Virus record (IMG/VR): IMGVR_UViG_3300045971_000577
Span: 62,001 to 126,000 of that record
Strand: one strand, 5' to 3'
DNA: 64,000 nt
The position numbers were made by a program, and so were the translations under genes. Within the stretch, counting starts at the first letter, position 1, and the number at the start of each line of letters is the position of its first letter. Below, piece by piece: positions 25,837 through 40,197 of this stretch. Below the pieces are notes generated by a model that saw only the letters and a program-made list of their open reading frames with translations, did no database searches and was not told the origin of the DNA.

Positions 25837-26144
25837 TTAGCTTGTATCAAATCAAATGGTACTACTTCAAAGTCCGGAACTAAGTATTCTGCATATTCGC
25901 CCACACGCTCGGGCGCTGGTGTATATCTCTTCCAATCATCGTCGATAACTATACACCAGGTACAGGGTCCATGGACCCTTTTCGGGTCCATACCTACCTT
26001 CATTTCCTTGATCGCTCTCTTAGCATTGTCTTCGCTAAGGAAAACCGATGCTGCAAGAAAGTCGTAGTAGAAATGTGCATGCTTAGAAGAAGTACACCAT
26101 GTGTTTGTGTTCTTCTCTCGAATAAAGAATAGCTGTCGGGTCAT
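25833..26144 (-). CDS. hypothetical protein
   Basis: 103 aa, coupled. Confidence 0.7.
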   Translation of the reverse strand: MTRQLFFIREKNTNTWCTSSKHAHFYYDFLAASVFLSEDNAKRAIKEMKVGMDPKRVHGPCTWCIVIDDDWKRYTPAPERVGEYAEYLVPDFEVVPFDLIQAK

Positions 26145-27052
26145 TTTCCTACCACATTTCCGAAAATATAGGTGTGTACTCGAGCTGCAACATGATACCC
26201 GCGCTCTACAGCACCTTCTGTGACTTTTGCAGCTACCTTATTTTGACCTTCTATATCGGCACCTACCGGCATAATCCAGACCGGCCAGTCGATGCCTTTT
26301 TTGCGATAAAGCGATGTAGCTGTCAGCACTTCGTTCCATGCTCGATCGGTTCCATTGGACACATATTTCAATTGCCCGGTACCCGACGACATAAAATATT
26401 GTGATACCACATCGGGCTTAACCGCGTCATTCCACTGTTCTCCGCTGAGATATAACTTTGGACTTACACTCCAAAATAGTTCGCCAGACATTCCCATATA
26501 TTCACTAAAATAGTCAGCAAATTTTTCTCGTATAGGCTGAGTTCCGTTAGTTTCTATTGTGACAAAATACGGTAAATTGTTTCTTCTTTCGAATTCTGAC
26601 ATTATATCAACGATAGCATTTTGATTCATCATAGGTTCGCCGCCGGTGAATGCCATATGCGTCCATTGCTTGCTTACCGGATGCAAAAATTTACCATCAG
26701 GATTAGATTCGGATTTTAGAAAAGATTCGAGTTGATCGCATATATCTTCCACGGTCGAAGAATTTGCTAAGTGCGCAAATTTCTTAGCCCAACTATATGA
26801 GCTATCGCATCCTTTACTAAACACTGGCAGATCCACCATTCTTTTTATAGAAGATACATCTATGGATTGATAATCAAGCACATATGTACTCTTGTCGCCG
26901 GGATTATCCTGACCGAAGCCGCTGCATTCGAAATTACATCCCCAGAAACGAATCCATACGGTAGCGACACCAGTGTATCTGCCTTCGCCCTGAATTGTCT
27001 TTCCAAAAATTTCCGAATATTTATATTTTTTCATATCTACATTTATCTCCAT
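26141..27052 (-). CDS. queE: 7-carboxy-7-deazaguanine synthase (radical SAM)
   Basis: SEIF..TIQGEG.YTG...VWIRF.GCNFEC...CDS.YSW, FTGGEP, IETNGT, SVSPKL, RVH..IFGN. Confidence 0.9.
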   Translation of the reverse strand: MEINVDMKKYKYSEIFGKTIQGEGRYTGVATVWIRFWGCNFECSGFGQDNPGDKSTYVLDYQSIDVSSIKRMVDLPVFSKGCDSSYSWAKKFAHLANSSTVEDICDQLESFLKSESNPDGKFLHPVSKQWTHMAFTGGEPMMNQNAIVDIMSEFERRNNLPYFVTIETNGTQPIREKFADYFSEYMGMSGELFWSVSPKLYLSGEQWNDAVKPDVVSQYFMSSGTGQLKYVSNGTDRAWNEVLTATSLYRKKGIDWPVWIMPVGADIEGQNKVAAKVTEGAVERGYHVAARVHTYIFGNVVGK

Positions 27053-27206
27053 GCCATCTTATATTATTCACCAGTGATGTCTCTTTTCCACAGTTATAGC
27101 ATGCTATTTTAGGTTGGGGTCTTCCTTTTTGTATTTTAGATATTTTAGCCTTTGCTTCATCCGAATCTTTATTGCGAAGGTAAGCATATGTGTAAAACAA
27201 TAACAA
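27021..27206 (-). pseudogene. internally deleted GIY-YIG/NUMOD3 homing endonuclease remnant
   Basis: N-terminal FYTYAYLRNKDS fused directly to EAKAKIS..QKG and C..CGK.....N..RWHGDKC C-terminal motifs. Confidence 0.65.
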
Positions 27207-27782
27207 TTATTCTCTCCCGCCCTTTAGCTTTTCCATTATTTTACTAGCTTCGTACATGAAAGTCAAATCGTCAAGCGTAAGAGTTCCTTTAACTTTCGCA
27301 AGTTCAATGATTTCCTCAAACACCGTATCTCTCATCTCAGCCTTTACCTTCTTATTGATTCCTGATGCTAGTTCAGCACCAAGCCGAAGTGTACAAGAAA
27401 AAGCCTCGGCAGCTTCGTCAATGTTTATTTCCTGACTCCATGTCACCGAACCATCAATATTCACTCGAACTATTTCAGTGTTGTTCTTACCATGCAAGGC
27501 AATTATATTAGTCGGTTGAGTAACCCCAATTGAGAACCCAGATCCAACAGTGTATGTCGAATAGGGATTAGCTGCGGCAGTAATATTTCCACTGTAGTTG
27601 AATTGATATCCAGGAAACGCCACACCGTTTGCATTTGGCATGGTTACCTGAATATTCCCGCCGCTACCGCTGCCTATTGCTGTGGTTGTGACTGTAGATA
27701 CGGCAGGTGCTGCTGCTATTTGGGCAGGGGTAGGTGTAGTACCTACCCCTGTATTGTTGTTTTTCTTACCAAACCAGCTCAT
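27207..27782 (-). CDS. hypothetical protein with low-complexity N-terminus
   Basis: 191 aa; ends SKIMEKLKGG. Confidence 0.75.
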   Translation of the reverse strand: MSWFGKKNNNTGVGTTPTPAQIAAAPAVSTVTTTAIGSGSGGNIQVTMPNANGVAFPGYQFNYSGNITAAANPYSTYTVGSGFSIGVTQPTNIIALHGKNNTEIVRVNIDGSVTWSQEINIDEAAEAFSCTLRLGAELASGINKKVKAEMRDTVFEEIIELAKVKGTLTLDDLTFMYEASKIMEKLKGGRE

Positions 27783-27783
27783 A

Positions 27784-28056
27784 TTATTCCCTTTTATCGT
27801 TTACTAACTTTTCTATTAGCTTATAGTTATCGTATGCTTCCTGTAATGCAGGAAAGCGTGCCTGAAGCTCTTCGTTAGGACGAAGAATGGCTAGCCGTTT
27901 TTCTATTTCGGCTAGCCTCTCTGTTACTTCTGCGAAATCTTTGTTCTTTGAAAGATCTAAGTCGAGGGTGGATCCCCATGTCGAACTCGCGACTATCATC
28001 CCGGAACCCACTGCGGTTATAGGAAAGTAATCGCCGGATTGCATATTTACTGACAT
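27784..28056 (-). CDS. hypothetical phage protein
   Basis: ERL..IEKRLAIL.PN.EL...FP.L..AY..YK..EKL. Confidence 0.75.
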   Translation of the reverse strand: MSVNMQSGDYFPITAVGSGMIVASSTWGSTLDLDLSKNKDFAEVTERLAEIEKRLAILRPNEELQARFPALQEAYDNYKLIEKLVNDKRE

Positions 28057-28259
28057 AGTGGAAACTTTATTTTGAAATAGAGTGCATCATCGGAATTCTC
28101 GAAACCGAAATGAATGTACTCTATTTGAGTTAGGCTGCCTACTGAAAACTTTATATCGACGCTATCCCTGCTATTAGCATTTACCCATTCTACCTTTTCG
28201 ATGTATGTGGTATCGTACGGGTATTTAAGTATGTTCTTGTATTTAGCAGAGAAGATCAC
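28047..28259 (-). CDS. small protein, F-x-x-x-x-DA-x-x-FK family
   Basis: FGFENSDDALYFKIKF; probable GTG start at 28259 (track extends it to 28385). Confidence 0.65.
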   Translation of the reverse strand: MIFSAKYKNILKYPYDTTYIEKVEWVNANSRDSVDIKFSVGSLTQIEYIHFGFENSDDALYFKIKFPLCQ

Positions 28260-28266
28260 CGGTTTT

Positions 28267-28407
28267 TCAGCTGTTGCGGCCTCCGCAGCCACCGCAGCAA
28301 GACGAGGCCGAATAGGTAAGCGTAGCACCATTTTCACCGTCCTCGCTAATTTCGACAGCAATGTCTCTTCCTGGATATTTTCCACTGATATAACCTATTA
28401 TATTCAT
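28267..28407 (-). pseudogene. orphaned duplicate 3' end of the QueD-like/DpdL gene
   Basis: IGYISGKYPGRDIAVEISEDGENGA aligns with YNIITSKYPNRSIKISVSEDNENGA of 29027..29407. Confidence 0.75.
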
Positions 28408-28454
28408 AATAACTCTTCTTATTGATAAATACACGACGATAGAGAGATCACCAC

Positions 28455-29051
28455 ATGCCACAACTAACTGAATCATCACATTATACTTGTTTTCTTTGCG
28501 GAAGTCAAGCAAACTTCATAAGTGTCAACTCCAAACAATACAGATGCGTCGAAAAAATAACCAGATGCCCGGGTTTTGTAGAAAAAGCAGAAAAATCCAG
28601 GCAAGAAAGAATATCTCCGGAGGATAGAAGAGCTCATATGAAGCTTATGAGTAATCACGGAAATAAGAAACTTTCTGAATTGCATAAAGACGGTAGTTGG
28701 AGGAAAGAAAAAAGTAAAAATATAACAATAGGTAAAGTATTGAACGGATCTGCCATAGATCCTTCTCTGAAGACTGCGTGGAAACTTTACGAAGACGCTG
28801 CAGACAGACATACTCGCGAAAGTTGGATTTATAATCAAGATAAAATAAATCCAACTAATCTTCCGCGCGGCATGATATACGAACTTGACCACAAATATAG
28901 TAAATCATACGGATTCAAAAATAATGTGCCGCCGGAAATAATAGGACATTGGTCAAATCTTCGGATGATAGATCAATCCTCAAATCGAAAGAAATACAAT
29001 ACATGCTCTATTACATTAGAGGAACTTTACTCCCTGATAAACTCCATATAG
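28455..29051 (+). mobile_element. HNH homing endonuclease
   Basis: YELDHKYS.SYGF.NNVPPEIIG..SNLRMI....N.KK; GATAAATA at 28424; opposite strand. Confidence 0.8.
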
Positions 29052-29407
29052 GCGCCATTTTCGTTATCTTCGCTGACGCTAATCTTTATTGATCTATTTG
29101 GATATTTTGATGTAATAATATTATATAAGTCTTCTGATATCATTTCGCATGATTTATAGTCGAGCACAAGAGTTTTCTCTCTGTATAGATTTTCTAACCA
29201 TCGCTTGAACTGTATAAACTCTATTGCTCGGTCGTTATGTTCTACTTCAATAAATACCTGAAAATGAAATATATGCCGATGAGGGTGTGATAGAAAACTT
29301 ACATCATATTCATCGCCCGTTGCAAGAGACGGATCGGTCTCTGCTGCTGGATATCTATGTATCCCCTCTTTTTCAAACTTCACCCAAATCCATCTACTTG
29401 TGATCAT
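29027..29407 (-). CDS. dpdL: QueD-like T-fold protein, DpdL-type (putative CDG decarboxylase)
   Basis: LSHPHRHIF matches the LxxxHRHxF signature recalled for DpdL, rather than QueD CxxxHGH; SCE and VSED.ENGA T-fold motifs. Confidence 0.6.
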   Translation of the reverse strand: MITSRWIWVKFEKEGIHRYPAAETDPSLATGDEYDVSFLSHPHRHIFHFQVFIEVEHNDRAIEFIQFKRWLENLYREKTLVLDYKSCEMISEDLYNIITSKYPNRSIKISVSEDNENGAYMEFIRE

Positions 29408-30219
29408 TTTACTTTGGCCTTTCCCTTCTTTGCAGTTTCCAATGGTTCTGTGGCCACCGGCGCGGGCGGTACTCCCTCGACATATGATTGTAGAAGGACG
29501 TCCCGTGTCGGCGGTTCAGATTTTGTGGTATTCTCTTCTTCATTGTCTGGCTTCAGTTTTGAACCCGAATCTGGATCAAGTCCAAGTAAGGAGTCATTTT
29601 GCACTACAGATACAGTTTCCTCAACTGTACCTGACAGTGCTGTTTCCTGGAACTGTTTCTTGATTGCAGCAAGATTGACTGCAGGAACATTGATATCAGC
29701 GTACACTTCATTCTTGATAACAACGTCAGTACCATACTCATCCCAGCCTGTAAAGCGGTTGCTGTCGGTAACTTCATGGAAATGCATGCACCACACGCCC
29801 GGGTTGGTTGCGTTGAAATCGACGTCGTCAATCTTCACTGTAAGATTTGGGCTCGAAGTTTCAATCTTAGGAATGCGTACCGATAGCAATGGTACGAAAA
29901 TGCGGCTTTGCCAGATGCCTGGGTTGAGCATCTTTAGCACTGTTTGGTGATCATGCGCTTCGTAGTCCAAGGAGACCCAAAATCCCTTGTCCAGTAATGC
30001 AGTGATTGTCTTGTCCCAATATGGGTCGAGATTACCACAGCTAAATGAGTGATTTGCACCCATGAAGATATGCGTTGTCTTGTGTTCGTTTGCAGTTTGT
30101 AGGATCTTAGCCAGTTCTGGCTTTCCAACTACAAACAGTGTTCTCTTTGCAAATGCCGGAGTGTGTTCCACTTCGGGACCCACAAAAAATACCACGTTAT
30201 CGTGTCCATCTCTATTCAT
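29404..30219 (-). CDS. hypothetical protein in the deazaguanine/glycosyltransferase cluster
   Basis: G.EVEHTPA...TLFVVG, HIF.GANHSF, KIDD.DF.ATNPGVW; disordered acidic C-terminus. Confidence 0.8.
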   Translation of the reverse strand: MNRDGHDNVVFFVGPEVEHTPAFAKRTLFVVGKPELAKILQTANEHKTTHIFMGANHSFSCGNLDPYWDKTITALLDKGFWVSLDYEAHDHQTVLKMLNPGIWQSRIFVPLLSVRIPKIETSSPNLTVKIDDVDFNATNPGVWCMHFHEVTDSNRFTGWDEYGTDVVIKNEVYADINVPAVNLAAIKKQFQETALSGTVEETVSVVQNDSLLGLDPDSGSKLKPDNEEENTTKSEPPTRDVLLQSYVEGVPPAPVATEPLETAKKGKAKVK

Positions 30220-30227
30220 AATGATCC

Positions 30228-30405
30228 TTATTTATCTGTATATTCTACCAATCTCACAGCCGCATCTAGCTGTGGGTTATCTCTGAGCATTTCTTTGACT
30301 TGTGCTAAAATCTCATCACAACCGGAGAGGCCTTCGCAACGAAGGCCTCTCCCATTCTTCGTCGTTGCCTTCGCAAACAATGAGTTCGAATGTGTATGTT
30401 TTCAT
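30228..30405 (-). pseudogene. small gene frameshifted inside a perfect 13-bp palindrome
   Basis: MKTYTFELIVCEGNDEEWE in one frame, EGLSGCDEILAQVKEML...VRLVEYTDK in the +1 frame; span 178 nt = 59 codons + 1. Confidence 0.6.
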
Positions 30406-31589
30406 CAATACTTTGCCTTAGCCACGTGCTTTCTGTAATCGTTAGTGTTGCGGCCCCATTGCTTGTAGTCGTTGACTTCCATCAAGATGTCCAGCGTACG
30501 ATCGATAGTACCGTTCTGCCAATCGCTCACTGCACCGGTTTCGTAAGTTGCAGGACGGGAAAACATTGCTTCCAGCTTATTGGCAGCGTCATTGACGCTC
30601 CACGGCAGATACATGTTCTTCTCGTTATTTGCAAACACTTCCGGGAAGCTACGATATGCAGGGTACAGGGTGAGTGTACCGAACGTATCTGCTTCGCTTA
30701 CGGTATTACTTACCCAATCTTGCAACGCACAGTTGAACAAAACGGTACTGTCAGCCAGCAACTCGTAATAGTCATTCTTCTTCAATCCCTCGTAGACCTT
30801 GATGTTTGCAGTACCGCTGGTTTGCAGGTACTTCAGAAACTCCAGGTGCGACTTGTTGTTGCTCTTCAGTTCAGGGTGGCCAGTAAAGATGGCAAACTCC
30901 ACTTCCGGGCGAGTCTTGTAAAAACGCTGCGCCAGTTGCATGTAGAATTCAGGTTGCTTCTCGTCGTCCCACCGTGCAGCAAATGCGACACGCTGTTCGC
31001 GCGAGGTAATCGGCTTCAAATAAGGTACGCGGTTGTACACTTCTTCCTTGCCAAACGGCAAGCCGGTAACGTAGATCGGAGCCTTCATGCCTGCAATACG
31101 CAGGTGGGCAACCATTTCCTCGCTTGCAACAAGAATGCCGTCAGCGAACTCGTCAACCATTTGCTCGAACTTACGCATCCAGTGCGCCATGCCTTCGCGA
31201 TTGACGAAATCGTCAGGATCCACCGATTGTGCCAAACAACGCACATAAACCTTCGGGCGGAACTTCTTCGGGACTTGTTGAATAATATACGGCAAGCTTT
31301 CGATACCCGGGGTAAACATGTCTTCGAAAAAGATTACATCATCCTTCGTAACCTTACCTTCCTTCATCAGTTGTACAAGATTTGCCATCTGGGTCATGCT
31401 GTAGTAGGTGCGACCATGTGCGTCAAGTACACTACCTGTAACAATCTTCTTATCGGTAGTGAGTTCTGCACCAACAATACATTCGTATTCGATTTCGCGT
31501 TGCTTGAACACGCGCTCATTCCAGTCCTGGAGTTGATAAGTGTATCTTGCAGTGTAAGATTCAAGGCCGCAATAGAAGAGTTTACGCAT
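30405..31589 (-). CDS. GT-B fold glycosyltransferase (GT4-like)
   Basis: VAFAARWDDEKQP, YYELLA.S.VLFN.ALQDWVS.T..EA..G...LYP.YRSFPE. Confidence 0.85.
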   Translation of the reverse strand: MRKLFYCGLESYTARYTYQLQDWNERVFKQREIEYECIVGAELTTDKKIVTGSVLDAHGRTYYSMTQMANLVQLMKEGKVTKDDVIFFEDMFTPGIESLPYIIQQVPKKFRPKVYVRCLAQSVDPDDFVNREGMAHWMRKFEQMVDEFADGILVASEEMVAHLRIAGMKAPIYVTGLPFGKEEVYNRVPYLKPITSREQRVAFAARWDDEKQPEFYMQLAQRFYKTRPEVEFAIFTGHPELKSNNKSHLEFLKYLQTSGTANIKVYEGLKKNDYYELLADSTVLFNCALQDWVSNTVSEADTFGTLTLYPAYRSFPEVFANNEKNMYLPWSVNDAANKLEAMFSRPATYETGAVSDWQNGTIDRTLDILMEVNDYKQWGRNTNDYRKHVAKAKY

Positions 31590-31603
31590 GTGTGTTCCTT
31601 AGG

Positions 31604-31855
31604 TTAGTTACTAGCTCTTAGAATATACGCTAAAGCGTCAGGTCCGTCAAGTCGCACCGTCTGGTTGCTATAGACGAGATATCCGTCTTCTGCTCTCCAA
31701 TGATTTGTACCAAGAGGTACAATCCGTAGCATCTTTGGATTTAGTTTGATAACACGGCCAATCTTCATACTGTTATGATGTACCATTGCTACATGGCAAC
31801 CTTCTTGTAATGGTTGACCCAGAATGTCAACGTGTTCCGGGGCCGGTTTTGCCAT
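31604..31855 (-). CDS. small SH3-like protein
   Basis: DILGQPL.EG.HVA...KIGRVIKLNPKM.RI; ends DALAYILR. Confidence 0.75.
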   Translation of the reverse strand: MAKPAPEHVDILGQPLQEGCHVAMVHHNSMKIGRVIKLNPKMLRIVPLGTNHWRAEDGYLVYSNQTVRLDGPDALAYILRASN

Positions 31856-32098
31856 AACTATTCCTTAGTTTATTTAATATTTCGTCATCGATCTCTTTGG
31901 ATATTGCTGCCGACATTTCTTCAGCTAAAATATCGCTAAGTGACTGCGAGTACATAGCATCGAGCTCTTTCTTGTTATATTTCAAACGCTCGATAATACG
32001 CTCTTCTTCGGTAAGGGGCTCTTCGTGAAGCTTCTTACCTATGTCTTCAATCGCCTCGATAGTCCACCTCGCATGGAGAGTGCGGGTTTATTTGTCAT
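31827..32098 (-). other. cryptic/frameshifted ORF resembling a segment of T4 gp23-type major capsid protein
   Basis: 86-codon frame TRTLHARWTIEA...LSDILAEEMSAAISKEIDDEILNKL with no in-frame start at its 5' end; ATG at 32098 is one base out of frame. Confidence 0.55.
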
Positions 32099-32387
32099 AG
32101 TCGATGCGGCGAATAAGTCTATCTCCGAGCCAATGCGAACAGTTTTCTTTTGCGTCGATGCTGAGCTTAGTAACCATCTTGTCGAACTTTTCTTTAGATA
32201 TCTTTCTTCCATCGATGATAGTCTCTCCCAGATAACGTTGAGATACAGATTCAAACATATCCGCGTCGTTACCTGAGTCAATCATAGTAACTTCGTCATA
32301 CGCATGTTCTAAACTTTCCGCTTCAATAACATACCTGTGACGAAAGGTAGTGATTGTGTCAACAACGAATAGTTTTTTCTTAGTCAT
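32088..32387 (-). CDS. hypothetical phage protein
   Basis: Start MTKKKLFVVDTI..FRHRYVIEA...A.DEVTM. Confidence 0.75.
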   Translation of the reverse strand: MTKKKLFVVDTITTFRHRYVIEAESLEHAYDEVTMIDSGNDADMFESVSQRYLGETIIDGRKISKEKFDKMVTKLSIDAKENCSHWLGDRLIRRIDYDK

Positions 32388-32806
32388 ATTCCTGCCAGTT
32401 TGTTTAGGGTTAGTTGCTCTTCTGCCCACCTGTGCTCTTGCTCAATGCGGGATTTGAGATAGTTTCGGATCGTATCTTTATGTGACCAAATGAATGTTTC
32501 ATATCTGCTCAGTCCATTACACGGGCAGTCATATACAAACATGATTCCGTTCATTTCCCCTGCGGAAACAGAGTCACAATCGTAGTGCAGAATTACACCT
32601 TCGGGATTTTCAGCATATTCTTCATTGCAATATTCTTTCCAACTACCATCTTCTTCATCTTGATAGCACGAAGCATCCGGACATAGATGTAATCGATTAC
32701 ACCATCCACAAGTAATATCCGAAGATCCGACACCAAATCCCGACATTGCATTGATAAACATATCGGACGGCTTTCTGTCGTCCTTGCGATATTCTTTCTT
32801 AGTCAT
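32384..32806 (-). CDS. hypothetical Cys-containing protein
   Basis: CGWCNRLH, DCPCN; ends EEQLTLNKLAGI. Confidence 0.75.
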   Translation of the reverse strand: MTKKEYRKDDRKPSDMFINAMSGFGVGSSDITCGWCNRLHLCPDASCYQDEEDGSWKEYCNEEYAENPEGVILHYDCDSVSAGEMNGIMFVYDCPCNGLSRYETFIWSHKDTIRNYLKSRIEQEHRWAEEQLTLNKLAGI

Positions 32807-32961
32807 AGTTTATAGACCCAATAACCCGAAACGGGGTAAGAAGGATAATCTCCAAAGGGGCGAGCATCGTGAAAAGCATGATGCCGTTCCCTATGGACGG
32901 TCTTTAGCCACACCCAGTTATTGTTAATTTTTACTGGGTGCCAGGCAAACCATTCCTTCAT
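32803..32961 (-). CDS. 52-aa protein (below cutoff), WFAW.PV family
   Basis: Hand-translated MKEWFAWHPVKINNNWVWLKTVHRE...; ATGA overlaps on both sides. Confidence 0.65.
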   Translation of the reverse strand: MKEWFAWHPVKINNNWVWLKTVHRERHHAFHDARPFGDYPSYPVSGYWVYKL

Positions 32962-33791
32962 GCTTCGAAACCTCTCGCTGTTTCGTAACTTACTATAAAT
33001 CCGGATGCATGGGCGTGGCCGCCGCCACCGAAGTTTGCTGCAATCTCGCCCACATCGACACCGTCTAATGCAGAGCGTAAACCAAACTGCCTGCCTGACG
33101 GGGTATCGTAATAGTAGGCAGCAAACGGTTCATGTCTACTTAAAATATCACACATATCCGAGCCGAACTGATATGGTATATTTGCTACCGGGACATTGTA
33201 TCCGCAAATATTTATTCTTCTGACCACCACATTCATTAGCTCTCTGATATCTTTAGCAACTCTACGTTCGATTGCCGAGCCCTCCCTAATCTGATCTTCG
33301 ATTCGTTGTTTTACCAGCATATCCCAGTTTTCAAATGTGTAGTCATAGCTGAATATGTTTGCCTGAACTTCTCTCGTTCCAAGAATATCAAACTTCCATC
33401 GATCTCTATCGTCGATGTGTTTGATAAACATAGGCACTTCACTATGAGGAAAGAAATATTGCCAGGTAAGCATTGCGCCGCTGGCGGTATTTGCTGGACT
33501 ATATTTTGTCTCAAACTTTTCGTGTGTATAACCTGCCATTGCTTTGATTGCTGTATCGTGGTGATCAATGTGTATCACCTTGCGTGCTTTTGCTACTATC
33601 TCTTCCATGACAGGTCGCTTATAGCTGAAATCTACAATATACACAATCCTACCAGTGGTATCCGGTGGTGCGTCTTTATAGAATCCTGGATGAAACTCTA
33701 CATTATCTTCGCCTTCTGCTAATCTAACTACCCATGCTGCGGTAAATCCATCAGCACAGTTTCCATGGTATATACATAACTTCTTATTCAC
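32958..33791 (-). CDS. DHH/DHHA1 family phosphoesterase
   Basis: YH.NCADG, VDFS, IDHH, GGGGH..ASGF. Confidence 0.9.
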   Translation of the reverse strand: MNKKLCIYHGNCADGFTAAWVVRLAEGEDNVEFHPGFYKDAPPDTTGRIVYIVDFSYKRPVMEEIVAKARKVIHIDHHDTAIKAMAGYTHEKFETKYSPANTASGAMLTWQYFFPHSEVPMFIKHIDDRDRWKFDILGTREVQANIFSYDYTFENWDMLVKQRIEDQIREGSAIERRVAKDIRELMNVVVRRINICGYNVPVANIPYQFGSDMCDILSRHEPFAAYYYDTPSGRQFGLRSALDGVDVGEIAANFGGGGHAHASGFIVSYETARGFEA

Positions 33792-33993
33792 AGCGATCCT
33801 TTAGTTCGGTACTCGAAAAGGTGTCGAAGCGCTCTTTGTTTGCAGAGATAAACTGTTCAGATATTAGCAGTGCAACTCCGTCGACATCTCCGATTCCGCG
33901 ACCTTTTATTGTTTTCGTGTAATGCTCTAATGCGAGCTGTATTGCAGAAATAGCTTCTTCTGCCTTAATGGGATATTCTATTAAATTTCTCAT
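33784..33993 (-). CDS. hypothetical protein
   Basis: 69 aa, coupled. Confidence 0.65.
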   Translation of the reverse strand: MRNLIEYPIKAEEAISAIQLALEHYTKTIKGRGIGDVDGVALLISEQFISANKERFDTFSSTELKDRCE

Positions 33994-34235
33994 CTTTCCC
34001 TCGTTCTGTTGTGAAGGCTTTTATGCCGTACGTGTTTATCGCGTCTATCGCGCCTGTAGCGCGGCCTTGAATGATAACGAGGAGAGCTGTCTGCTAATAT
34101 TGCATGGGCACAAATCAACCCATTCAACATACCGTGCATATACTCCACATTTGGATCTCTATTATCGACACAATCTCTTTGTATTCCGATAAGATTCTCC
34201 AAACATACTAACTTTCGAGTTAGATCCTTATTCAT
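33990..34235 (-). CDS. hypothetical protein
   Basis: YMHGMLNGLICA.A motif, basic tail. Confidence 0.7.
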   Translation of the reverse strand: MNKDLTRKLVCLENLIGIQRDCVDNRDPNVEYMHGMLNGLICAHAILADSSPRYHSRPRYRRDRRDKHVRHKSLHNRTRER

Positions 34236-35754
34236 CCGAGTCTATAAGATCCTCAATATCTTCTGCAGCCATTGCATCAATATCGACATTCAATCTCTTC
34301 AGATTTGCTTGCTTGTTTTCCTTGAAGCTGATCTTATTCAGATACTTACCATGATCCTTTATCATATCTCGCGGATTTGGTGTGGCTGGATCTAAGATTA
34401 CTCTAATGAGATCTCTTACCATAGGTATAATAGCAGGTATATGTTCGCCTGTCATCTTGGCGCCACGGTGATCCAACGCTGGCAAATCGCGATATGAATA
34501 GCCTTTCGTGAGATCATCAATATCCGCCAGTCTGTTTACTTCCTGAATTGCCTGAATATGGTTGTAAACATTGTGCGCCATTACAAGTGCATACGAAGTG
34601 GTATCCCAACTTGTCTTGCCAATCTTGCCGTGCTTATTTACGTCTGTAGGACCCATCACGCAGATATCACCTACATCAAGCCTTTCCATAATCGGACCTT
34701 GGAAAGGCATTGCAAGAGTTGAACCCTTGAGTGACTTATTATCCAGTCCACGACCCATCGAATATGTTAGCTTCTGCGGGGTAAAGTGGTTGTAATCATA
34801 ACACAATGCGTATCCACCAGCTGCAACGAACGGAGATGCTGCGTCAAAGCTGACGTTGATATTCGGGTTATCATGCTGCTTCAGGCAGCGTTCAATTGTA
34901 GTAAGGTAGCACGCCCAATCAAGTCTACCAATGCCCAGAAAGTGAATCCAGTCCTTGTCCTTAAGTGCATCAAGTTCTCTTAGGTCAAGCAATCGATCCA
35001 GTACACATGCCATATCGCGCATATTCACACCTGCGAATGCGTAGCCTTCTAGCGTTCTGTCGCGTGTGTAATTCATTGCTTCTACAGCATCAGGGATGCT
35101 ATACGGAATTACCGCATCAAACCATTCCTTGGATGTCTCTGGGGAACTTCCGCTGAGTACGTTTAGGAACTTCGTCTTGCCAGGAATACGATGCGTCATG
35201 AAGTAGTCGAGATTGTGGACAGTAATATCCAACGTATCGGCAAATTTTGTCAAACCAGTCTTTTCACTCAAAGAACCTTCCGCAGCAAATGCCGGAACGT
35301 CGAGTGTCATTGACCAATCCGATGTGTGTTCAAGATAGCGCAGAATTTCTTCTCTTAGCTTATCGCCGCCGGCGCCCTTTACGGTTGTCCAGTCGAGTTT
35401 AATAACGCCTGTAGCAATTTGAAACCCGCCTGAGTCACCGATAAGAATAGTATCCTTAGGACGGTTGTGGATCATGGGTTCACGGTCATTGCATTTGCTA
35501 AGATTTCGTTCAGCGTGACCTGCAGAATACAAACCATACTTGTAGCTGAAATAAGCTTCGTCTGTGCCCTTTAGAAAATCAAGACCAGCAATACCGAGTT
35601 CGAAGTTCTTGGGAATTCTCGATTCTGAAACAAATTCCGGGTCAGCGGCTGCCTTACCGAGGTGGGTTGTATAAAACCCACTAATAGCCGGCAAATATTT
35701 TGCCCAACCACCCTTGATATGCCGCTCTGTAAAATCTACTCTATTATTTGTCAT
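34228..35754 (-). CDS. dpdA: TGT-fold guanine transglycosylase, DpdA-like
   Basis: GDSGGFQI, MTLDVP, HFLG, SFDAASP catalytic motifs; no obvious C-terminal zinc site of bacterial tRNA TGT; next to replication genes. Confidence 0.7.
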   Translation of the reverse strand: MTNNRVDFTERHIKGGWAKYLPAISGFYTTHLGKAAADPEFVSESRIPKNFELGIAGLDFLKGTDEAYFSYKYGLYSAGHAERNLSKCNDREPMIHNRPKDTILIGDSGGFQIATGVIKLDWTTVKGAGGDKLREEILRYLEHTSDWSMTLDVPAFAAEGSLSEKTGLTKFADTLDITVHNLDYFMTHRIPGKTKFLNVLSGSSPETSKEWFDAVIPYSIPDAVEAMNYTRDRTLEGYAFAGVNMRDMACVLDRLLDLRELDALKDKDWIHFLGIGRLDWACYLTTIERCLKQHDNPNINVSFDAASPFVAAGGYALCYDYNHFTPQKLTYSMGRGLDNKSLKGSTLAMPFQGPIMERLDVGDICVMGPTDVNKHGKIGKTSWDTTSYALVMAHNVYNHIQAIQEVNRLADIDDLTKGYSYRDLPALDHRGAKMTGEHIPAIIPMVRDLIRVILDPATPNPRDMIKDHGKYLNKISFKENKQANLKRLNVDIDAMAAEDIEDLIDSDE

Positions 35755-35974: not shown

Positions 35975-36227
35975 ATGTAAATTTTCCGTTTTCGTCTATT
36001 AGACCGAGGTCTAGAAGAATTTGACGCCTATACACGGGATCTTCTTTTATACGATGTTTTTCTTCATCCATTTCTGGTTTCATTTCGGGATCACTAAGAC
36101 GAACCATTTCACCGTTTTCCCAAAATCCTCCACGAGCTTTAGCAGCCTCAAGATCACGCCATAAGTGATAATCGGGATATTTCAATGCCAACATTGTGGC
36201 GTCCATATCCCGATGTTTCTTTACCAT
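35967..36227 (-). CDS. hypothetical protein
   Basis: 86 aa; ends LGLIDENGKFT. Confidence 0.7.
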   Translation of the reverse strand: MVKKHRDMDATMLALKYPDYHLWRDLEAAKARGGFWENGEMVRLSDPEMKPEMDEEKHRIKEDPVYRRQILLDLGLIDENGKFTYE

Positions 36228-36961
36228 TAGCTCTTGCCAGCTGGGATGATGTACTGGTACTTGCCCAATCCACTATCGATATCAATCTTCATTGCACCCA
36301 TATCGGAGAACTTGACAGATGCGCTGGATGCGCTATCAGCTAACTTCAGGATACTTAGTACCTGCGACAGCGGATAGGACCATTGCTTCAGTGTGCCAGT
36401 AACGTTCTTAGCGAACGGAACAGTTACGCGGTCGGTAGGACCGCTACCAATTGCGAAAAACAATGTGCCCTTATCAACACTTACAGTGAAACGCTTTTCA
36501 AAGCCACCGAGGATGCCCTGATATGCAGAAAGTTCTGCAATATTCTTCTTTTCTGGAGCGATAGTGACATTCCATGTTGCACCCTTGAATGGCGGAACCT
36601 TAACTTGTTCGTTAATCATTGCCTCACTCATGAAGCGATACGATGCTACCGACCCTGCCTGATTGTCAAAACGTACTTCAACGGGCATTTCCGCGGTGCC
36701 GCGAAGTTCCTTAACAACATCAACAGTGGACGCAGAATGCAAATCCATATAACCCTTCAGAACTGTCAAACGAGACAAACCTACAGTGGAATCAATATCT
36801 GTAATGGGTTGATACATATCACCGAAGATAACAACAGTCTTGTCAGCATCGATTGCTTCGATCTTTGCTTCTGTGCCGCTACCTACAATCTTAACCATAT
36901 CGATAAAGCCCAGCGAACTTGTGTGCTTCACGATGTCTTTCATACTGTCCAAAATGTTCAT
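36227..36961 (-). CDS. putative DNA polymerase sliding clamp (gp45/PCNA-like)
   Basis: 244 aa alpha/beta pattern, ends IDSGLGKYQYIIP; lies just downstream of DNA polymerase. Confidence 0.65.
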   Translation of the reverse strand: MNILDSMKDIVKHTSSLGFIDMVKIVGSGTEAKIEAIDADKTVVIFGDMYQPITDIDSTVGLSRLTVLKGYMDLHSASTVDVVKELRGTAEMPVEVRFDNQAGSVASYRFMSEAMINEQVKVPPFKGATWNVTIAPEKKNIAELSAYQGILGGFEKRFTVSVDKGTLFFAIGSGPTDRVTVPFAKNVTGTLKQWSYPLSQVLSILKLADSASSASVKFSDMGAMKIDIDSGLGKYQYIIPAGKS

Positions 36962-37245: not shown

Positions 37246-40197
37246 TCAAAGTGCGCTGAAGTCAAACAAGGTTTCCAGGTGTGCATGTTCCTTGTTTGTG
37301 CGGGATAGATCCCAATTCAAACAACCAACAAGATTTTTTACCTTTTGGTCAACAATACCTGCCATCATGTCTTCGCTGTCAAATGGTAGATCTAGGAACC
37401 ATTGTGGCAAGTGAACTTCGTCTACAGGATACGCAATACTAGAAAGCCTGTTCTCTGGGGTTTCACGTAGCTTGCAAACAATAATCTTCTGTCCGTCAAT
37501 AATACGCATGGAGTGTTGATCCATGTGCATATCCTTCATCCTATTCCATGCAAGACTTGCTGTTACGTGTCCGGGTACATGTAGATTGCCTACTTCTTCG
37601 CCCTTCATTTTCATATGCATTGCGGCATCAACTTTATCACGATAATGCGACAGTTTATTCACAGCTCTCGGTGTGCCTTGTTGCCACGGTTTCATATCCT
37701 CAAACTTTTCCTTGAACTTTCTGATTTTTTCAATAATAAAGTTTTCGCCCTTATCGGTAAGTGTGTCCAATAGAATCTCAGATAGAAACTGTTGTACAAA
37801 CTTAGGAGTATCTGCACGCTTCAAGTCCAGGCCCATTGCCTTCACCTTGCCAGGCTTGCCACCGACGTCAAGCCTGATTCCGTCCTTGTCAAACATCAGA
37901 CAAGCGTAACGCTTCTTTACAATCCAAAGGCCGCTTTCGGAAATAGTTTCTCTTGAGCTCGCAATAACTCCAGTTGACCGTTTAATGGGCACGTTGAGTT
38001 TGGTATGTAAAAAATCCGGGAACGTTGCCGAGACCGCCCCGGCAAGTCCATTATACGTATCAATGATGGACTCCTTTGTCCACTCGACCTCACCAGAATC
38101 AATCTCCCTTCTAAGAACTGGATATGCTGAAAAGTAGCACGAGTCAGTATCTCCGTAGACAATTGCGTCACCATAATGGTCATAGTTCCCTGTAATCATT
38201 TCGTTTGTTTTAGCCGCCATATGCTTGGTAATGGTTCTACCAGTCAATGTTGTAGATTGTCCGAGACGCTGATCGAAGAAGCGGCTTCCTGCGTTCAGCA
38301 AGGCGCCGTAAGCAGAGTTCAAGTTGATCTTCTTTACTAGCTGTCTCTTATCCCAAAATCCGATAACGCGGCGCAGGACCTTCTGATCCCGACTGATTGC
38401 CTTACCGTCCTTTACCATAAGATTGTGTTGATTCATGTATTGAACTACACGCTTTTTATGCCCTTCTTCCAGTAGTTCTTTCAACTTTTTTGGTCTATAT
38501 GCTTCGGACTCTAGGTAGGGATTAGCCTTAGTCTCTACATCGCTGATATCGTCATTTATGAACAAATCTTGAGTTATTTTGACACCTTCGATCTTTGGAT
38601 TATCTTCAATATCAGTATAGTTAGTCATGATACCTTGAAGAGTCTTGCGCTCACTATACCAACGTGTCAACAGACCCGGAATTACACCGTCAATGTCAGT
38701 TCTGAAAATAGTACCGTTAGAACTAATACACCACGGCTGCCCGGATTGAAAAATCAGGTCACTAAGTTCTTTACCTGTGACCTCGAACTCCTGACCGTCT
38801 TCCATATCTAGTATTAGCTTAGTCCCGATATCCTTATCGTAAAACTCTTCCATTTCTAGTACATTGAATCTATCGTTCCACCAAGATGCGAATGTATATT
38901 TCGCGCCCTTGCGTTCCCAGTCTGCAATAGCCTGATTTGTGCGATCAAGTCTAATCTGTCCAACAATAGTTTCTGGACTCATATTTAGCGTTCTAATAAC
39001 TGATGGATACAGCGACTTCATGTCAGTTGATGCAATCCACTTATGTAGCCCACGCTTCGGTGTAGCAACCCAACCGCCTGCCGCACGATTTGCTTCGCTT
39101 TCTTTGCCGTGCTTCTTATCAGGGCAAACCATATTACGGTTGTGAGCTTCCATAAGAACATTCTGGTCTGTAACTGCAACCGCGCCCATTGTAGTCTGAA
39201 TAAGAACACAGCTCGAATGGGCAATGGAACTTGCCAAATCAACGAACTGTAATTTTTTATCGAGTTTATCGAGAAGTCGGGTATCTTGGATGTTATACTC
39301 TAAGAACTTCTTAAAGTCGTCGTTATACAACTCATCCAATGTACCTTCGTACTCAACCTTTGTATCGCCTAGTTCAATTTCTGCAATTGAGTTTAGCTTG
39401 TAGCTGTGGCGCTCTTCATAGTTGTACTTCTTGTACAATTCAAGGTAGTCAACGTGTACACGACCGATAAGGTCATACGTAGGTTCTACCTTGCCGCCGC
39501 GTTCGATTTCACGAACCTTAGGTTGTTGTTCCCATAGGCATAATCTGCGTGCTTCTTGCTTACCAAGAATACGCTTGATTCTATTTACTACATACGGAAT
39601 ATCGTAAAATGAACTGTTCCAGCCGCTTAGTACATCTGCGTCTTCAATAACGTCCATAAATGCATTCAACATATCCCCTTCTTTTTCGAAGAGAACCACA
39701 TTACCGACTTGGTCTGCTATTTCTTGTGCTTCATCCCACGTAAGTGTCTCCGGTGGTATTGCTAGACAGATAATTTCATCTAACCATTGTAGATGTACAG
39801 AGATAGATGTAATAGAGTTCTTTGCATCTGCAGGATCCGACCAGCCAAAGTCTTTATCAAAGCTGGTTTCAATGTCGAAAAATGCTACATGAAGTGCAGG
39901 TGCGTCAATGTGCTGATAGTTGTGCTCGAGACAACGGAAAACAGGATCCACATCCGTTTCCCACTTCTTCACATTGTGAGAAAGTGTCTTAACAAGCTTT
40001 TGTTTTTCAGCGTATGTGCGTGGAACAACCTTCTTTACTGTATCGCCGTAGATAGACTTATTAGTCCCTCTCGGATCGTTTATAAAAAAGTGATAGTCAG
40101 GTGCGTATTCCTTGTAAACTCTCTTACCGTTTACTCTTTCAACAATCCTGATTAGTTCTGATTCGCCGCTCTTCTTGAAAAATGCGTCAACGTAGAT
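37246..40197 (-). CDS. family B DNA polymerase (983 aa, probable ATC start)
   Basis: Exo FDIET, GWNS..YDIPY, YNIQD; pol DMKSLYPS, KINLNSAYG, YGDTDS, KKRY; frame continues 75 codons upstream of the track GTG to ATC TAC GTT GAC GCA after AAGGGG. Confidence 0.95.
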   Translation of the reverse strand: MYVDAFFKKSGESELIRIVERVNGKRVYKEYAPDYHFFINDPRGTNKSIYGDTVKKVVPRTYAEKQKLVKTLSHNVKKWETDVDPVFRCLEHNYQHIDAPALHVAFFDIETSFDKDFGWSDPADAKNSITSISVHLQWLDEIICLAIPPETLTWDEAQEIADQVGNVVLFEKEGDMLNAFMDVIEDADVLSGWNSSFYDIPYVVNRIKRILGKQEARRLCLWEQQPKVREIERGGKVEPTYDLIGRVHVDYLELYKKYNYEERHSYKLNSIAEIELGDTKVEYEGTLDELYNDDFKKFLEYNIQDTRLLDKLDKKLQFVDLASSIAHSSCVLIQTTMGAVAVTDQNVLMEAHNRNMVCPDKKHGKESEANRAAGGWVATPKRGLHKWIASTDMKSLYPSVIRTLNMSPETIVGQIRLDRTNQAIADWERKGAKYTFASWWNDRFNVLEMEEFYDKDIGTKLILDMEDGQEFEVTGKELSDLIFQSGQPWCISSNGTIFRTDIDGVIPGLLTRWYSERKTLQGIMTNYTDIEDNPKIEGVKITQDLFINDDISDVETKANPYLESEAYRPKKLKELLEEGHKKRVVQYMNQHNLMVKDGKAISRDQKVLRRVIGFWDKRQLVKKINLNSAYGALLNAGSRFFDQRLGQSTTLTGRTITKHMAAKTNEMITGNYDHYGDAIVYGDTDSCYFSAYPVLRREIDSGEVEWTKESIIDTYNGLAGAVSATFPDFLHTKLNVPIKRSTGVIASSRETISESGLWIVKKRYACLMFDKDGIRLDVGGKPGKVKAMGLDLKRADTPKFVQQFLSEILLDTLTDKGENFIIEKIRKFKEKFEDMKPWQQGTPRAVNKLSHYRDKVDAAMHMKMKGEEVGNLHVPGHVTASLAWNRMKDMHMDQHSMRIIDGQKIIVCKLRETPENRLSSIAYPVDEVHLPQWFLDLPFDSEDMMAGIVDQKVKNLVGCLNWDLSRTNKEHAHLETLFDFSAL

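Follow-up and report, generated by a model that had tools for sequence, protein, structure and literature searches.

A predicted glycosyltransferase linked to a 7-deazaguanine DNA-modification gene cluster in a jumbo phage

Several phages are able to replace guanine in their DNA with 7-deazaguanine derivatives, and a preliminary description of a 64,000-nucleotide stretch of phage DNA (here termed the window) raised the question whether such a base might additionally carry a sugar. In that description, queE, a QueD-like gene with the motif LxxxHRHxF, an unknown gene of 271 codons (here termed X) and a GT-B glycosyltransferase (GT) gene were noted close together, while a gene for a TGT-fold transglycosylase was placed beside a sliding clamp and a polymerase. 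It was suggested that the GT and X may add a sugar to a deazaguanine, for example to 7-carboxy-7-deazaguanine (CDG), or form a second modification layer. Therefore, the genes of the window, the complete 369-kb jumbo phage genome in which it lies and the related loci of other phages were analyzed here by profile searches, structure prediction and gene neighborhood comparison. A glycosylated 7-deazaguanine would be a new kind of DNA base, but its presence has not been measured.

In a first step, the gene content was examined. The described gene cluster is real, and all five genes were found as open reading frames at the positions given in Table 1, together with the neighboring features.

Table 1. 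Features of the deazaguanine locus (positions refer to the window)
Position	Strand	Length (aa)	Feature
26141-27052	-	303	QueE-like radical-SAM CDG synthase
about 28311-28389	-		Degenerate dpdL 3' remnant, just beyond the HNH gene
28455-29051	+		HNH homing-endonuclease-like gene; abuts the 3' end of dpdL and overlaps it by 25 nt
29027-29407	-	126	DpdL, QueD-like paralogue and predicted CDG decarboxylase; start overlaps the stop of X by 4 nt
29404-30219	-	271	Orphan protein X
29710-30219	-	170	Conserved globular domain of X (aa 1-170)
29404-29709	-	101	Low-complexity acidic tail of X, ending in KKGKAKVK
30405-31589	-	394	GT-B fold, GT4-like (retaining-type) glycosyltransferase
34228-35754	-	508	Divergent DpdA-like (TGT-fold) DNA-guanine transglycosylase candidate
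36227-36961	-	244	Protein between polymerase and DpdA, possibly a sliding clamp (identity not confirmed)
37246-39972	-	908	Family-B DNA polymerase

The QueE-like protein matched phrog_2076 (E 2e-54), its best NCBIfam hits were all QueE models, although below their cut-offs, and cysteines C39, C43 and C82 are invariant across 10 phage QueEs. The DpdL protein carries L-S-H-P-H-R-H-I-F and matched phrog_17812; the earlier assignment of LxxxHRHxF to DpdL proved right, since this motif is given as the DpdL signature in PMC10516641. It is 50% identical to the protein in the dpdL position of Acidovorax phage ACP17 and 58% to the PA5oct homologue, and residues H17, H43, R44, H45, H57, R60, E63, E88, E113, D114 and E116, among them the metal-site histidines, are conserved in 40 homologues. 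The adjacent HNH gene matched phrog_5104 and phrog_23051, and the dpdL remnant beyond it matched the DpdL HMM (E 7.6e-8) with 13/26 identity to DpdL aa 98-123.

For the GT, Pfam Glycos_transf_1 scored only E 2.6e-4, which is below the cut-off, but the AlphaFold model (pLDDT 90.5) matched the GT4 enzymes PglA, MshA, LmbT, BshA and SenB in Foldseek searches at E 1e-11 to 1e-12. Residues E10, R15, Y16, R206, E210, K211, E299 and E317 are invariant in 58 homologues. The TGT-fold protein had no Pfam TGT hit; however, it carries DSGGFQ, is 50% identical to PA5oct EST35_0316, aligned by hhalign with the DpdA group of ACP17 and BUDD (probability 96.9%, E 1.4e-10) and matched viral TGT-like/DpdA clusters structurally (TM 0.80-0.84 by the hit). 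It is the only TGT-fold candidate in the genome. The polymerase was identified by PF00136 (1e-27) and PF03104 (5e-21). The sliding clamp of the preliminary description was not confirmed, as this protein had no Pfam hit and matched only phrog_12062, of unknown function; it is present in this position in 118 of 134 loci, and its positional counterpart in phage Phosso is annotated as a clamp.

The absence of queC, queF and folE from the window, as described before, was confirmed. In the whole genome queC, queF and a canonical TGT are likewise absent, whereas folE and queD are present about 62 kb away from the cluster at genome positions 153,011-154,261. Thus, the pathway is the QueC-less FolE/QueD/QueE/DpdL/DpdA set.

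It had been stated in advance that the proposed link would fail if GT homologues were distributed independently of dpdA and queE, and the comparative analysis, which provides the new result of this study, did not find such independence. In 79 viral contigs chosen by the GT alone, dpdL was nearby in 77, and both misses lie at contig ends, so that 77 of 77 informative loci have dpdL. The linkage was also found in 126 of 134 non-redundant viral loci, in which the clustering recurs to an extent that is more than chance. It has to be considered that the 80-locus samples are the hits closest to the proteins of the window and that shared ancestry therefore inflates the counts. The GT lies within about 3 kb of dpdL in six unrelated isolate lineages (PA5oct, ACP17, Phosso, BUCT-ZZ01, BCSR5 and BUDD/X1), and at least six different gene orders and two different DpdA types occur. 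In this sense the GT family is a near-obligate neighbor of dpdL. A more distant GT relative in Xanthomonas phage PhiXhv-15, on the other hand, lies 115 kb from the queE of that phage, in a genome without dpdL.

The dependence runs one way, since dpdL occurs without the GT in RHph_I1_18, whose DpdL is 63% identical to the one studied here, and in Ahp1, Bakedbeans, D479 and Cellulophaga phage phiST. The GT therefore looks like an add-on acting after DpdL, and CDG as the acceptor is no better supported than 7-deazaguanine. PhiST, whose DNA is proven to carry plain 7-deazaguanine (dDG), is among the closest known systems (Cui et al. 2023, PMC10516641). It shares FolE, QueD, QueE, a QueD paralogue with LxxxHRHxF, a divergent DpdA, the lack of QueC and the clustering with replication genes, but it has a small DpdA3 (259 aa), to which hhalign links the DpdA type of the window only weakly (probability 28%), and a P-loop protein between dpdL and dpdA3, and it has neither the GT nor X.

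The same protein set as in the window is present in Pseudomonas jumbo phage PA5oct (Wroclawvirus) and in ACP17. PA5oct has polB, the clamp-like protein, DpdA, GT, DpdL and then QueE, whereas X lies 25 kb from this cluster and a phosphoribosyltransferase (PRTase) and a truncated epimerase are present. In ACP17, FolE, X, DpdA, GT, DpdL and QueE are encoded contiguously, while the order in the window is GT, X, DpdL. None of these genes except queE is functionally annotated in those records. PA5oct DNA resists several restriction enzymes and its authors suspect a modified G, the chemistry of which has not been identified (PMC12191111).

Sugar-nucleotide and sugar-tailoring genes were found inside related clusters, namely an NAD epimerase/4,6-dehydratase in 72 of 134 loci, a DegT aminotransferase in 32, UDP-glucose dehydrogenase-like genes in some, an LmbE/PIG-L deacetylase in BCSR5 and a second GT in BUCT-ZZ01. 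These genes strengthen the idea that a real sugar transfer is linked to the deazaguanine pathway, although the genome analyzed here lacks them.

Protein X was regarded in the preliminary description as a possible partner of the GT. It had no Pfam, PHROG or NCBIfam hit, belongs to a large orphan family with 547 representative clusters in metagenomes, and its confident AlphaFold model (pLDDT 95) gave no convincing fold match, this structural comparison being one of the examinations proposed beforehand. X lies between dpdA and dpdL in 105 of 122 complete loci (86%) but is absent from the other 17 and from four GT-positive isolate lineages. Accordingly, it is an accessory and not a required partner, nothing ties it to sugar chemistry specifically, and its role is not determined. 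A complex prediction for DpdA, DpdL and X gave no answer. Distant X homologues occur beside a UDP-glucose dehydrogenase, or beside Dam and Hc1, with no dpdL in the short flanks.

Taken together, the earlier interpretation is supported only in part. Gene content, the DpdL motif, the absence of queC and the linkage of GT and dpdL were observed directly, whereas the reaction sequence is inferred with differing certainty. The best explanation is a QueC-less modification system of the DpdL type extended by a glycosylation step, to which a probability of about 0.5 is assigned. The conversion of GTP to CDG by FolE, QueD and QueE is established enzymology. The conversion of CDG to 7-deazaguanine by DpdL, a QueD paralogue retaining the zinc site, is a published prediction that was never validated. 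DpdL plus DpdA from ACP17 did not make dDG in E. coli and the authors suggested that other enzymes are needed (PMC10516641), a result that also counts in favor of the extended system. The exchange of guanine in phage DNA by the DpdA-like enzyme, encoded beside the replication genes, is assumed by analogy with fold and family. Finally, from gene linkage and fold, the GT would transfer a hexose from a nucleotide sugar onto the deazaguanine, most likely on the base once it is in DNA, although it could also happen on the free base before insertion. Since this phage encodes no sugar-nucleotide genes, the donor would be a host pool such as UDP-glucose or UDP-GlcNAc, while relatives bring their own genes for amino- or deoxy-sugars. 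X is an optional, enzyme-like accessory translationally coupled to dpdL.

No chemical data exist for this phage or any GT-positive relative, and nothing here shows that a sugar ends up on a deazaguanine in DNA or where it would attach. 7-Deazaguanine has no obvious hydroxyl handle, so that the acceptor would have to be N2, O6 or a ring carbon, and a sugar at N2 would sit in the minor groove and could hinder replication. N2 has a natural-product precedent in huimycin of Kutzneria albida, where HuiG, annotated with the GT4 domain PF13439 and encoded next to folE/queD/queE-type genes, puts GlcNAc on N2 of a 7-deazaguanine base. HuiG acts, however, on a free, O-methylated preQ0-derived base to make a secreted metabolite in a pathway that has QueC; homology to the GT of the window beyond the shared superfamily was not examined. 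Sugar transfer onto a 7-deazaguanine derivative already in a nucleic acid occurs in glycosyl-queuosine formation in tRNA by QTMAN/GTDC1, a GT4-type enzyme, and QTGAL, a comparison likewise not pursued by analysis, but the acceptor there is a cyclopentenediol hydroxyl, and the pathway studied here has no such side chain.

Among the alternatives, the one that survives best, although it is considered unlikely, is that the final base is plain dDG and that the GT, with or without X, is needed to make or deliver it, for example via a transient glycosyl or ribosyl-type intermediate of CDG or 7-deazaguanine used by DpdL or DpdA, with no sugar remaining in DNA. The failed dDG formation in E. coli, the tight coupling of GT and dpdL, and the recurrence of a PRTase in 41 of 134 loci, in PA5oct and in BUCT-ZZ01, which recalls the tubercidin route of CDG plus PRTase plus decarboxylase, are in line with this view. 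However, phiST makes fully substituted dDG without this GT, RHph_I1_18 likewise lacks it, and dedicated amino- and deoxy-sugar genes, a deacetylase and a second GT are hard to explain for a transient carrier.

Somewhat less likely still, the GT and X might have nothing to do with the deazaguanine base and might glycosylate a phage or host protein, a cell-envelope component or another metabolite, being near dpdL only because all are early or replication-module genes in related phages. The nearest solved structures of the GT indeed act on small molecules, lipids or proteins and not on DNA, and the unlinked GT relative of PhiXhv-15 and the distant X homologues fit this reading. On the contrary, the adjacency survives the different gene orders, both DpdA types and six taxonomically unrelated isolate lineages, and other replication genes are not conserved to that degree next to the GT.

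It is doubtful that the GT makes a soluble, huimycin- or dapiramicin-like glycosylated 7-deazapurine acting during infection, for example as an inhibitor or signal. HuiG and the small-molecule acceptors of MshA, BshA, LmbT and SenB speak for it, but a DpdA-type DNA transglycosylase is part of the module in 122 of 134 loci, the PA5oct genome itself is restriction-resistant, and no export or self-resistance genes were noticed. The second modification layer raised earlier, in the form of glycosylation of a hydroxymethyl-pyrimidine as by the alpha- and beta-GT (AGT and BGT) of T-even phages, is very unlikely, because, although all known phage DNA glycosylations are on such bases, the only thymidylate-synthase-family gene in the genome looks like an ordinary thymidylate synthase (matching solved thymidylate synthases at E 1e-54 to 5e-68 and keeping the PPCH and FNIASY motifs), no hydroxymethylase family appears among the 25 commonest families around the module, and T4 AGT and BGT are not among the top 50 structural matches of the GT.

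Although it belongs to a different, GT4-like family, with the T-even enzymes the GT would still share the GT-B fold and the presumed logic of a second protective layer added after the base is in DNA, here on a purine analogue with no hydroxymethyl handle. For the phage, the expected benefit of such a glycosylated 7-deazaguanine is protection of its DNA from restriction and other DNA-targeting defences.

The window forms part of a complete viral genome of 369,145 bp with direct terminal repeats, that is, a jumbo phage, and the region of interest is a run of minus-strand genes. The stop of the orphan gene X and the start of the QueD-like gene overlap by 4 nt. Outside the window folE and queD sit together about 62 kb from dpdL, whereas queC, queF and a canonical TGT are absent from the whole genome. 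A megablast search of the region against the phage collection, from which the window's own record may be absent, found nothing.

Coordinates of the features described in the text. Window coordinates refer to bases 62,001-126,000 of the genome; L numbers are the handles of individual loci.
Sequence	Coordinates	Strand	Feature
Window	37246-39972	-	Family-B polymerase
Window	36227-36961	-	244-aa protein of unknown family (phrog_12062)
Window	34228-35754	-	508-aa protein, DpdA candidate
Window	32958-33791	-	DHH-family phosphoesterase (phrog_4771, 3.5e-89)
Window	30405-31589	-	394-aa GT-like protein
Window	29404-30219	-	271-aa orphan, X
Window	29027-29407	-	126-aa QueD-like protein (DpdL)
Window	28267-29051		Region with HNH gene and degenerate dpdL copy
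Window	28455-29051	+	HNH homing-endonuclease-like gene
Window	about 28311-28389	-	Degenerate copy of the last ~26 codons of dpdL
Window	26141-27052	-	QueE (phrog_2076, 2e-54)
Window	17952-18920		Second ORF with a weak match to the phage QueE profile
Genome	153,011-154,261		folE and queD
Genome (L190:1483-2958)	154,783-156,258	-	Thymidylate synthase with HNH-like insert, next to folE/queD
L014; L017; L187	2-1725; 4784-7494; 		More distant members of the X family
L042	2621-2884		Small ORF between dpdL and the GT
L051; L002; L008; L186	15172-15714; 9922-10356; 5456-5917; 5051-5512		Type-I phosphoribosyltransferase
L009; L010	11267-12634; 5879-6373		PAPS-reductase-like protein of the BCSR5 and BUDD clusters
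L189 (Xanthomonas phage PhiXhv-15)	4618-7852		Distant GT relative with GlmS and BshB-like deacetylase
L011 (Vibrio phage Bakedbeans gp176); L022	9212-10363; 9431-10312		Longer proteins with a C-terminal DpdL domain

The gene complement was compared with that of the phage 7-deazaguanine DNA-modification systems of the Dpd type (Hutinet 2019, Cui 2023). The CDG-forming enzymes are all encoded by the phage, as FolE was detected with PF01227 at 1.8e-63 and QueD with PF01242 at 5.6e-27 in addition to the QueE of the window. In this QueE the three invariant cysteines are spaced C39-x3-C43-x38-C82 with a long insert before the third, a spacing which is conserved across 10 phage QueEs and differs from the Cx3Cx2C and Cx14Cx2C arrangements of bacterial QueEs. 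A second ORF of the window matched the phage QueE profile only weakly (E 2e-4) and is probably another radical-SAM protein; it was not examined. The thymidylate synthase gene next to folE and queD is one open frame of 491 aa, in which the two halves of an ordinary thymidylate synthase are separated by an in-frame HNH-endonuclease-like insert at about aa 140-310 (phrog_2081, 7e-37) that could be an intein-like or in-frame homing element.

The 126-aa protein carries L-S-H-P-H-R-H-I-F, and Cui et al. define DpdL by exactly this change of CxxxHGH of QueD to LxxxHRHxF and propose that it decarboxylates CDG to 7-deazaguanine (PMC10516641). L39, H43, R44, H45 and F47 as well as a set of His, Arg, Glu and Asp residues are invariant in 40 homologues, the protein is 50% identical to the ACP17 protein in the dpdL position, and the genome context (FolE, QueD, QueE and a DpdA candidate present, QueC absent) is that expected for DpdL. 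With regard to a QueD-like T-fold, PF01242 does not reach the protein even at E <= 1 and no structure was predicted; relatedness is inferred from 31% identity to phiST CGPG_00067, which the same paper links to PF01242 by HHpred, and the fold is left undecided. CDG decarboxylase activity was not assayed here and is also unproven in the literature, since no dDG was made in E. coli with the phiST or ACP17 genes (PMC10516641). In Vibrio phage Bakedbeans and at locus L022 the DpdL domain is the C-terminal third of a longer annotated protein (383 and 293 aa, respectively) whose N-terminal part has no Pfam hit, which may be a fusion or a mis-called start. In the window, the HNH homing-endonuclease-like gene is wedged against the 3' end of dpdL, and the degenerate dpdL copy just beyond it (13/26 identical; DpdL HMM E 7.6e-8) looks like the footprint of a homing event that duplicated part of the target gene.

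The 508-aa protein gave no Pfam TGT hit, and searches of PDB sequences with the protein alone and as a profile returned nothing. It does carry the DSGGFQ motif, aligns by hhalign with the ACP17/BUDD DpdA group with a probability of 96.9%, and matches viral TGT-like/DpdA clusters structurally (TM 0.80-0.84, by the hit), and on these grounds it was taken as the TGT-fold DpdA of the system, although it was not assigned to one of the subfamilies DpdA1 to DpdA4. It is 50% identical to PA5oct EST35_0316, which occupies the same place after the polymerase and the clamp-like gene. The DHH-family phosphoesterase between the GT and dpdA is not among the families conserved around dpdL in relatives.

The AlphaFold model of the GT (pLDDT 90.5), for which six sequences from annotated phage records were left out of the alignment, shows a GT-B fold with two Rossmann domains. 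The best Foldseek matches are GT4-type enzymes, namely PglA, MshA, BshA, LmbT, SenB and PimB' (probability 1.00 and E 1e-11 to 1e-12 for PglA, MshA, BshA, LmbT and PimB'), and the neighbours in the structural atlas are GT4 clusters. By sequence the protein stays below the gathering score of Pfam Glycos_transf_1 (21.0 bits against a cut-off of 26.4); it belongs to a divergent viral clade and is not a curated member. R206, E210, K211, E299 and E317 in the C-terminal domain are invariant in 58 sequences, but their mapping onto the nucleotide-sugar site is inference in the absence of a superposition, and whether they bind the donor is not settled by this conservation. Neither T4 alpha- nor beta-glucosyltransferase appears among the top 50 PDB matches.

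Residues 1-170 of X form a conserved domain that was found in 547 representative clusters, mostly as stand-alone proteins of about 170 aa, while the clade of the window adds a variable, acidic, low-complexity tail that ends in a lysine patch. Searches of Pfam, NCBIfam, PHROGs and the named clusters of the ESM atlas gave nothing for X. Structure prediction followed by Foldseek had been proposed in advance as a check on this protein; the AlphaFold model is confident (pLDDT 95) but has no convincing structural relative, with E >= 0.09 in the PDB and only its own family in the AFDB clusters. VIA gave Z <= 6.7, with STAS domains for the N-terminal half and QueE at Z 5.5-6.1 over about 130 residues, and the atlas gave a TM of 0.58 to QueE clusters. 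A QueE paralogue was rejected at sequence level, because hhalign against phage QueEs gave a probability of 0.2% and no cysteine, and hence no three-cysteine 4Fe-4S motif, is conserved in 99 sequences; the middling shape resemblance is treated as a lead only. X is also not the equivalent of phiST CGPG_00066, which is a P-loop protein, and proposed homologues in Phosso ('glycosylase') and BUCT-ZZ01 (174 aa) were rejected. A complex prediction for DpdA, DpdL and X gave no answer and is not used as evidence. The conserved polar residues (E16, E18, N56, S58, K129, D131, D132, N139, W143, T157, W159, Y162) look like an active or ligand-binding site, which is an inference. More distant members of the X family (31-37% identical; loci L014, L017 and L187) lie directly after a UDP-glucose dehydrogenase-like gene, or between a Dam methyltransferase and an Hc1-like histone gene, with no dpdL visible in these short contigs; the family may serve more than the deazaguanine module.

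The main result is comparative. By tblastn and profile searches of whole records the GT family was found within about 3 kb of dpdL in six isolate lineages: PA5oct-like Pseudomonas jumbo phages (DpdA, GT, DpdL), Acidovorax ACP17 (FolE, X, DpdA, GT, DpdL, QueE), Sinorhizobium Phosso (DpdL, GT), Synechococcus BUCT-ZZ01 (DpdL, GT), Burkholderia BCSR5, and Xanthomonas BUDD/X1 (GT, DpdA, DpdL, QueE). In contrast, dpdL without the GT occurs in RHph_I1_18, whose DpdL is 63% identical to that of the window, in Ahp1, Bakedbeans and D479, and by locus inspection also in phiST and MA9V-3. PhiST DNA is fully substituted with plain dDG.

In 80 viral contigs chosen by X, the neighbours were the 508-type DpdA in 76, dpdL in 73, the GT in 67, FolE in 45 and QueE in 33 loci, the misses being at contig ends. 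A distribution of GT homologues independent of dpdA and queE had been named beforehand as an outcome that would speak against the proposed link; of 79 viral contigs chosen by the GT, 77 have dpdL within 10 kb and the other two have the GT at the contig start. Pooling and de-replication gave 134 loci, with the GT in 126, DpdA in 122 and X in 108. Gene orders vary: with A for the 508-type DpdA, a for the ACP17/BUDD-type DpdA, L for DpdL, G for the GT, E for QueE and F for FolE, A-X-L-G was found in 84 loci, A-L-G in 17, A-G-X-L (the type of the window) in 10 and E-F-a-L-G in 3, and others make up the remainder. Where X is missing, dpdA directly abuts dpdL. Since no conserved stretch was available in the broad X and GT alignments, narrower ones were used, and the samples are the hits nearest to the proteins of the window, so that common descent inflates the numbers. 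The argument for functional coupling therefore rests on the persistence of adjacency through rearrangements, through a swap of DpdA type, and across unrelated phage taxa. A small conserved ORF (about 88 codons, stop to stop) lies between dpdL and the GT in 92 of the 134 loci, among them L042; it has no family hit, and no homologue was found in the genome of the window.

Clustering of all ORFs around dpdL revealed recurrent neighbours that make or tailor nucleotide sugars: an NAD-dependent epimerase/4,6-dehydratase in 72 of 134 loci, a DegT-family sugar aminotransferase in 32, UDP-glucose dehydrogenase-like genes, a PIG-L/LmbE-type deacetylase in BCSR5, and a second GT in BUCT-ZZ01. The LmbE-type deacetylase is the usual partner of the GT4 enzymes MshA and BshA. 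This is what one expects if the GT really transfers a sugar and if different lineages use different sugars. The genome of the window has none of these genes, so it would draw on a host nucleotide sugar. The BCSR5 and BUDD clusters contain a PAPS-reductase-like (PP-loop) protein, and in BCSR5 an AAA_28 protein and the deacetylase lie between dpdL and the GT, which hints at lineage-specific extra chemistry. A type-I phosphoribosyltransferase is also recurrent (41 of 134 loci, PA5oct and BUCT-ZZ01) but absent from this genome; it could salvage the guanine released by DpdA during base exchange, or it could point to a nucleotide-level route to deazaguanine as in tubercidin.

The clustering pointed out in the preliminary description is thus real. 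Its proposal that the glycosyltransferase may add a sugar to a deazaguanine is supported as far as the linkage is concerned, but its chemistry is untested. What the analysis itself demonstrates is the gene complement, the folds apart from that of DpdL, and the linkage statistics. That FolE, QueD and QueE make CDG and that DpdA-family enzymes exchange guanine in DNA is established elsewhere, and the conversion of CDG to DG by DpdL is a prediction from the literature. The action of the GT downstream of DpdL on the deazaguanine is our inference, drawn because the GT requires dpdL while dpdL does not require the GT, and because near-identical DpdLs occur with and without the GT. The atom that takes the sugar, the sugar used, and whether transfer happens on DNA or on the free base were not determined, and virion DNA was not analyzed for a 7-deazaguanine derivative, the only indirect evidence being the restriction resistance of the relative PA5oct. 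The huimycin GT HuiG, annotated with the GT4 domain PF13439, shows that N2-glycosylation of a 7-deazaguanine base exists in nature.

In the furthest-reaching form of this reading, the virion DNA of this phage and of a large and environmentally abundant set of T4-like and jumbo phages, including the cultured PA5oct, ACP17, BUCT-ZZ01, Phosso, BCSR5 and BUDD, carries a glycosylated 7-deazaguanine, which would be the first sugar-bearing purine-type base in any DNA. It would be made by a dedicated GT4-clade enzyme that evolved with DpdL, lineage-specific sugars (hexose, amino-sugar, deoxy-sugar or disaccharide) would be set by the accessory sugar genes, and X would be a new-fold enzyme or specificity factor of the pathway. 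The probability of this reading is put at 0.45, and there is roughly an even chance that a new, sugar-bearing DNA base is encoded.

Among the alternatives, the GT may be needed only to make plain dDG, it may be unrelated to DNA, or it may make a soluble deazapurine glycoside. A distant GT relative in Xanthomonas phage PhiXhv-15 forms a block with GlmS and a BshB-like deacetylase, 115 kb from queE and in a genome without dpdL, and it shows that the wider GT family is not restricted to dpdL clusters. Its match starts only at residue 77, so it lacks the N-terminal E10/R15-Y16-T17 block that is invariant in the dpdL-linked clade, and it may represent a different glycosylation system. Glycosylation of a hydroxymethyl-pyrimidine is unlikely, since the only thymidylate-synthase-family gene of the genome is a standard thymidylate synthase.

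In the literature searched, only one work mentions DpdL (PMC10516641), and it never mentions a glycosyltransferase; likewise, no description of this module was found on deazaguanine in combination with glycosyltransferases or glycosylation. The work on PA5oct-like therapeutic phage candidates notes QueE and a PTPS-like gene but does not identify the base (PMC12191111). Every known sugar-modified DNA base is a hydroxymethyl-pyrimidine, and every known deazaguanine DNA base carries a small substituent (cyano, amido, aminomethyl, formyl, methyl, carboxy or hydrogen). Several carriers of the module are cultured, which makes the question directly accessible to experiment, and the analysis also defines two uncharacterised protein families, the DpdL-linked GT clade and the orphan X family. 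A glycosylated deazaguanine would explain both the unidentified modified G of the PA5oct-like phages (PMC12191111) and the failure to reconstitute dDG from ACP17 DpdL plus DpdA (PMC10516641). It would join the two themes of sugar-modified and deazaguanine bases and add a new class of DNA hypermodification, and it would bear on restriction evasion, on type IV and glycosylase-based defences, and on sequencing and enzymology tools.
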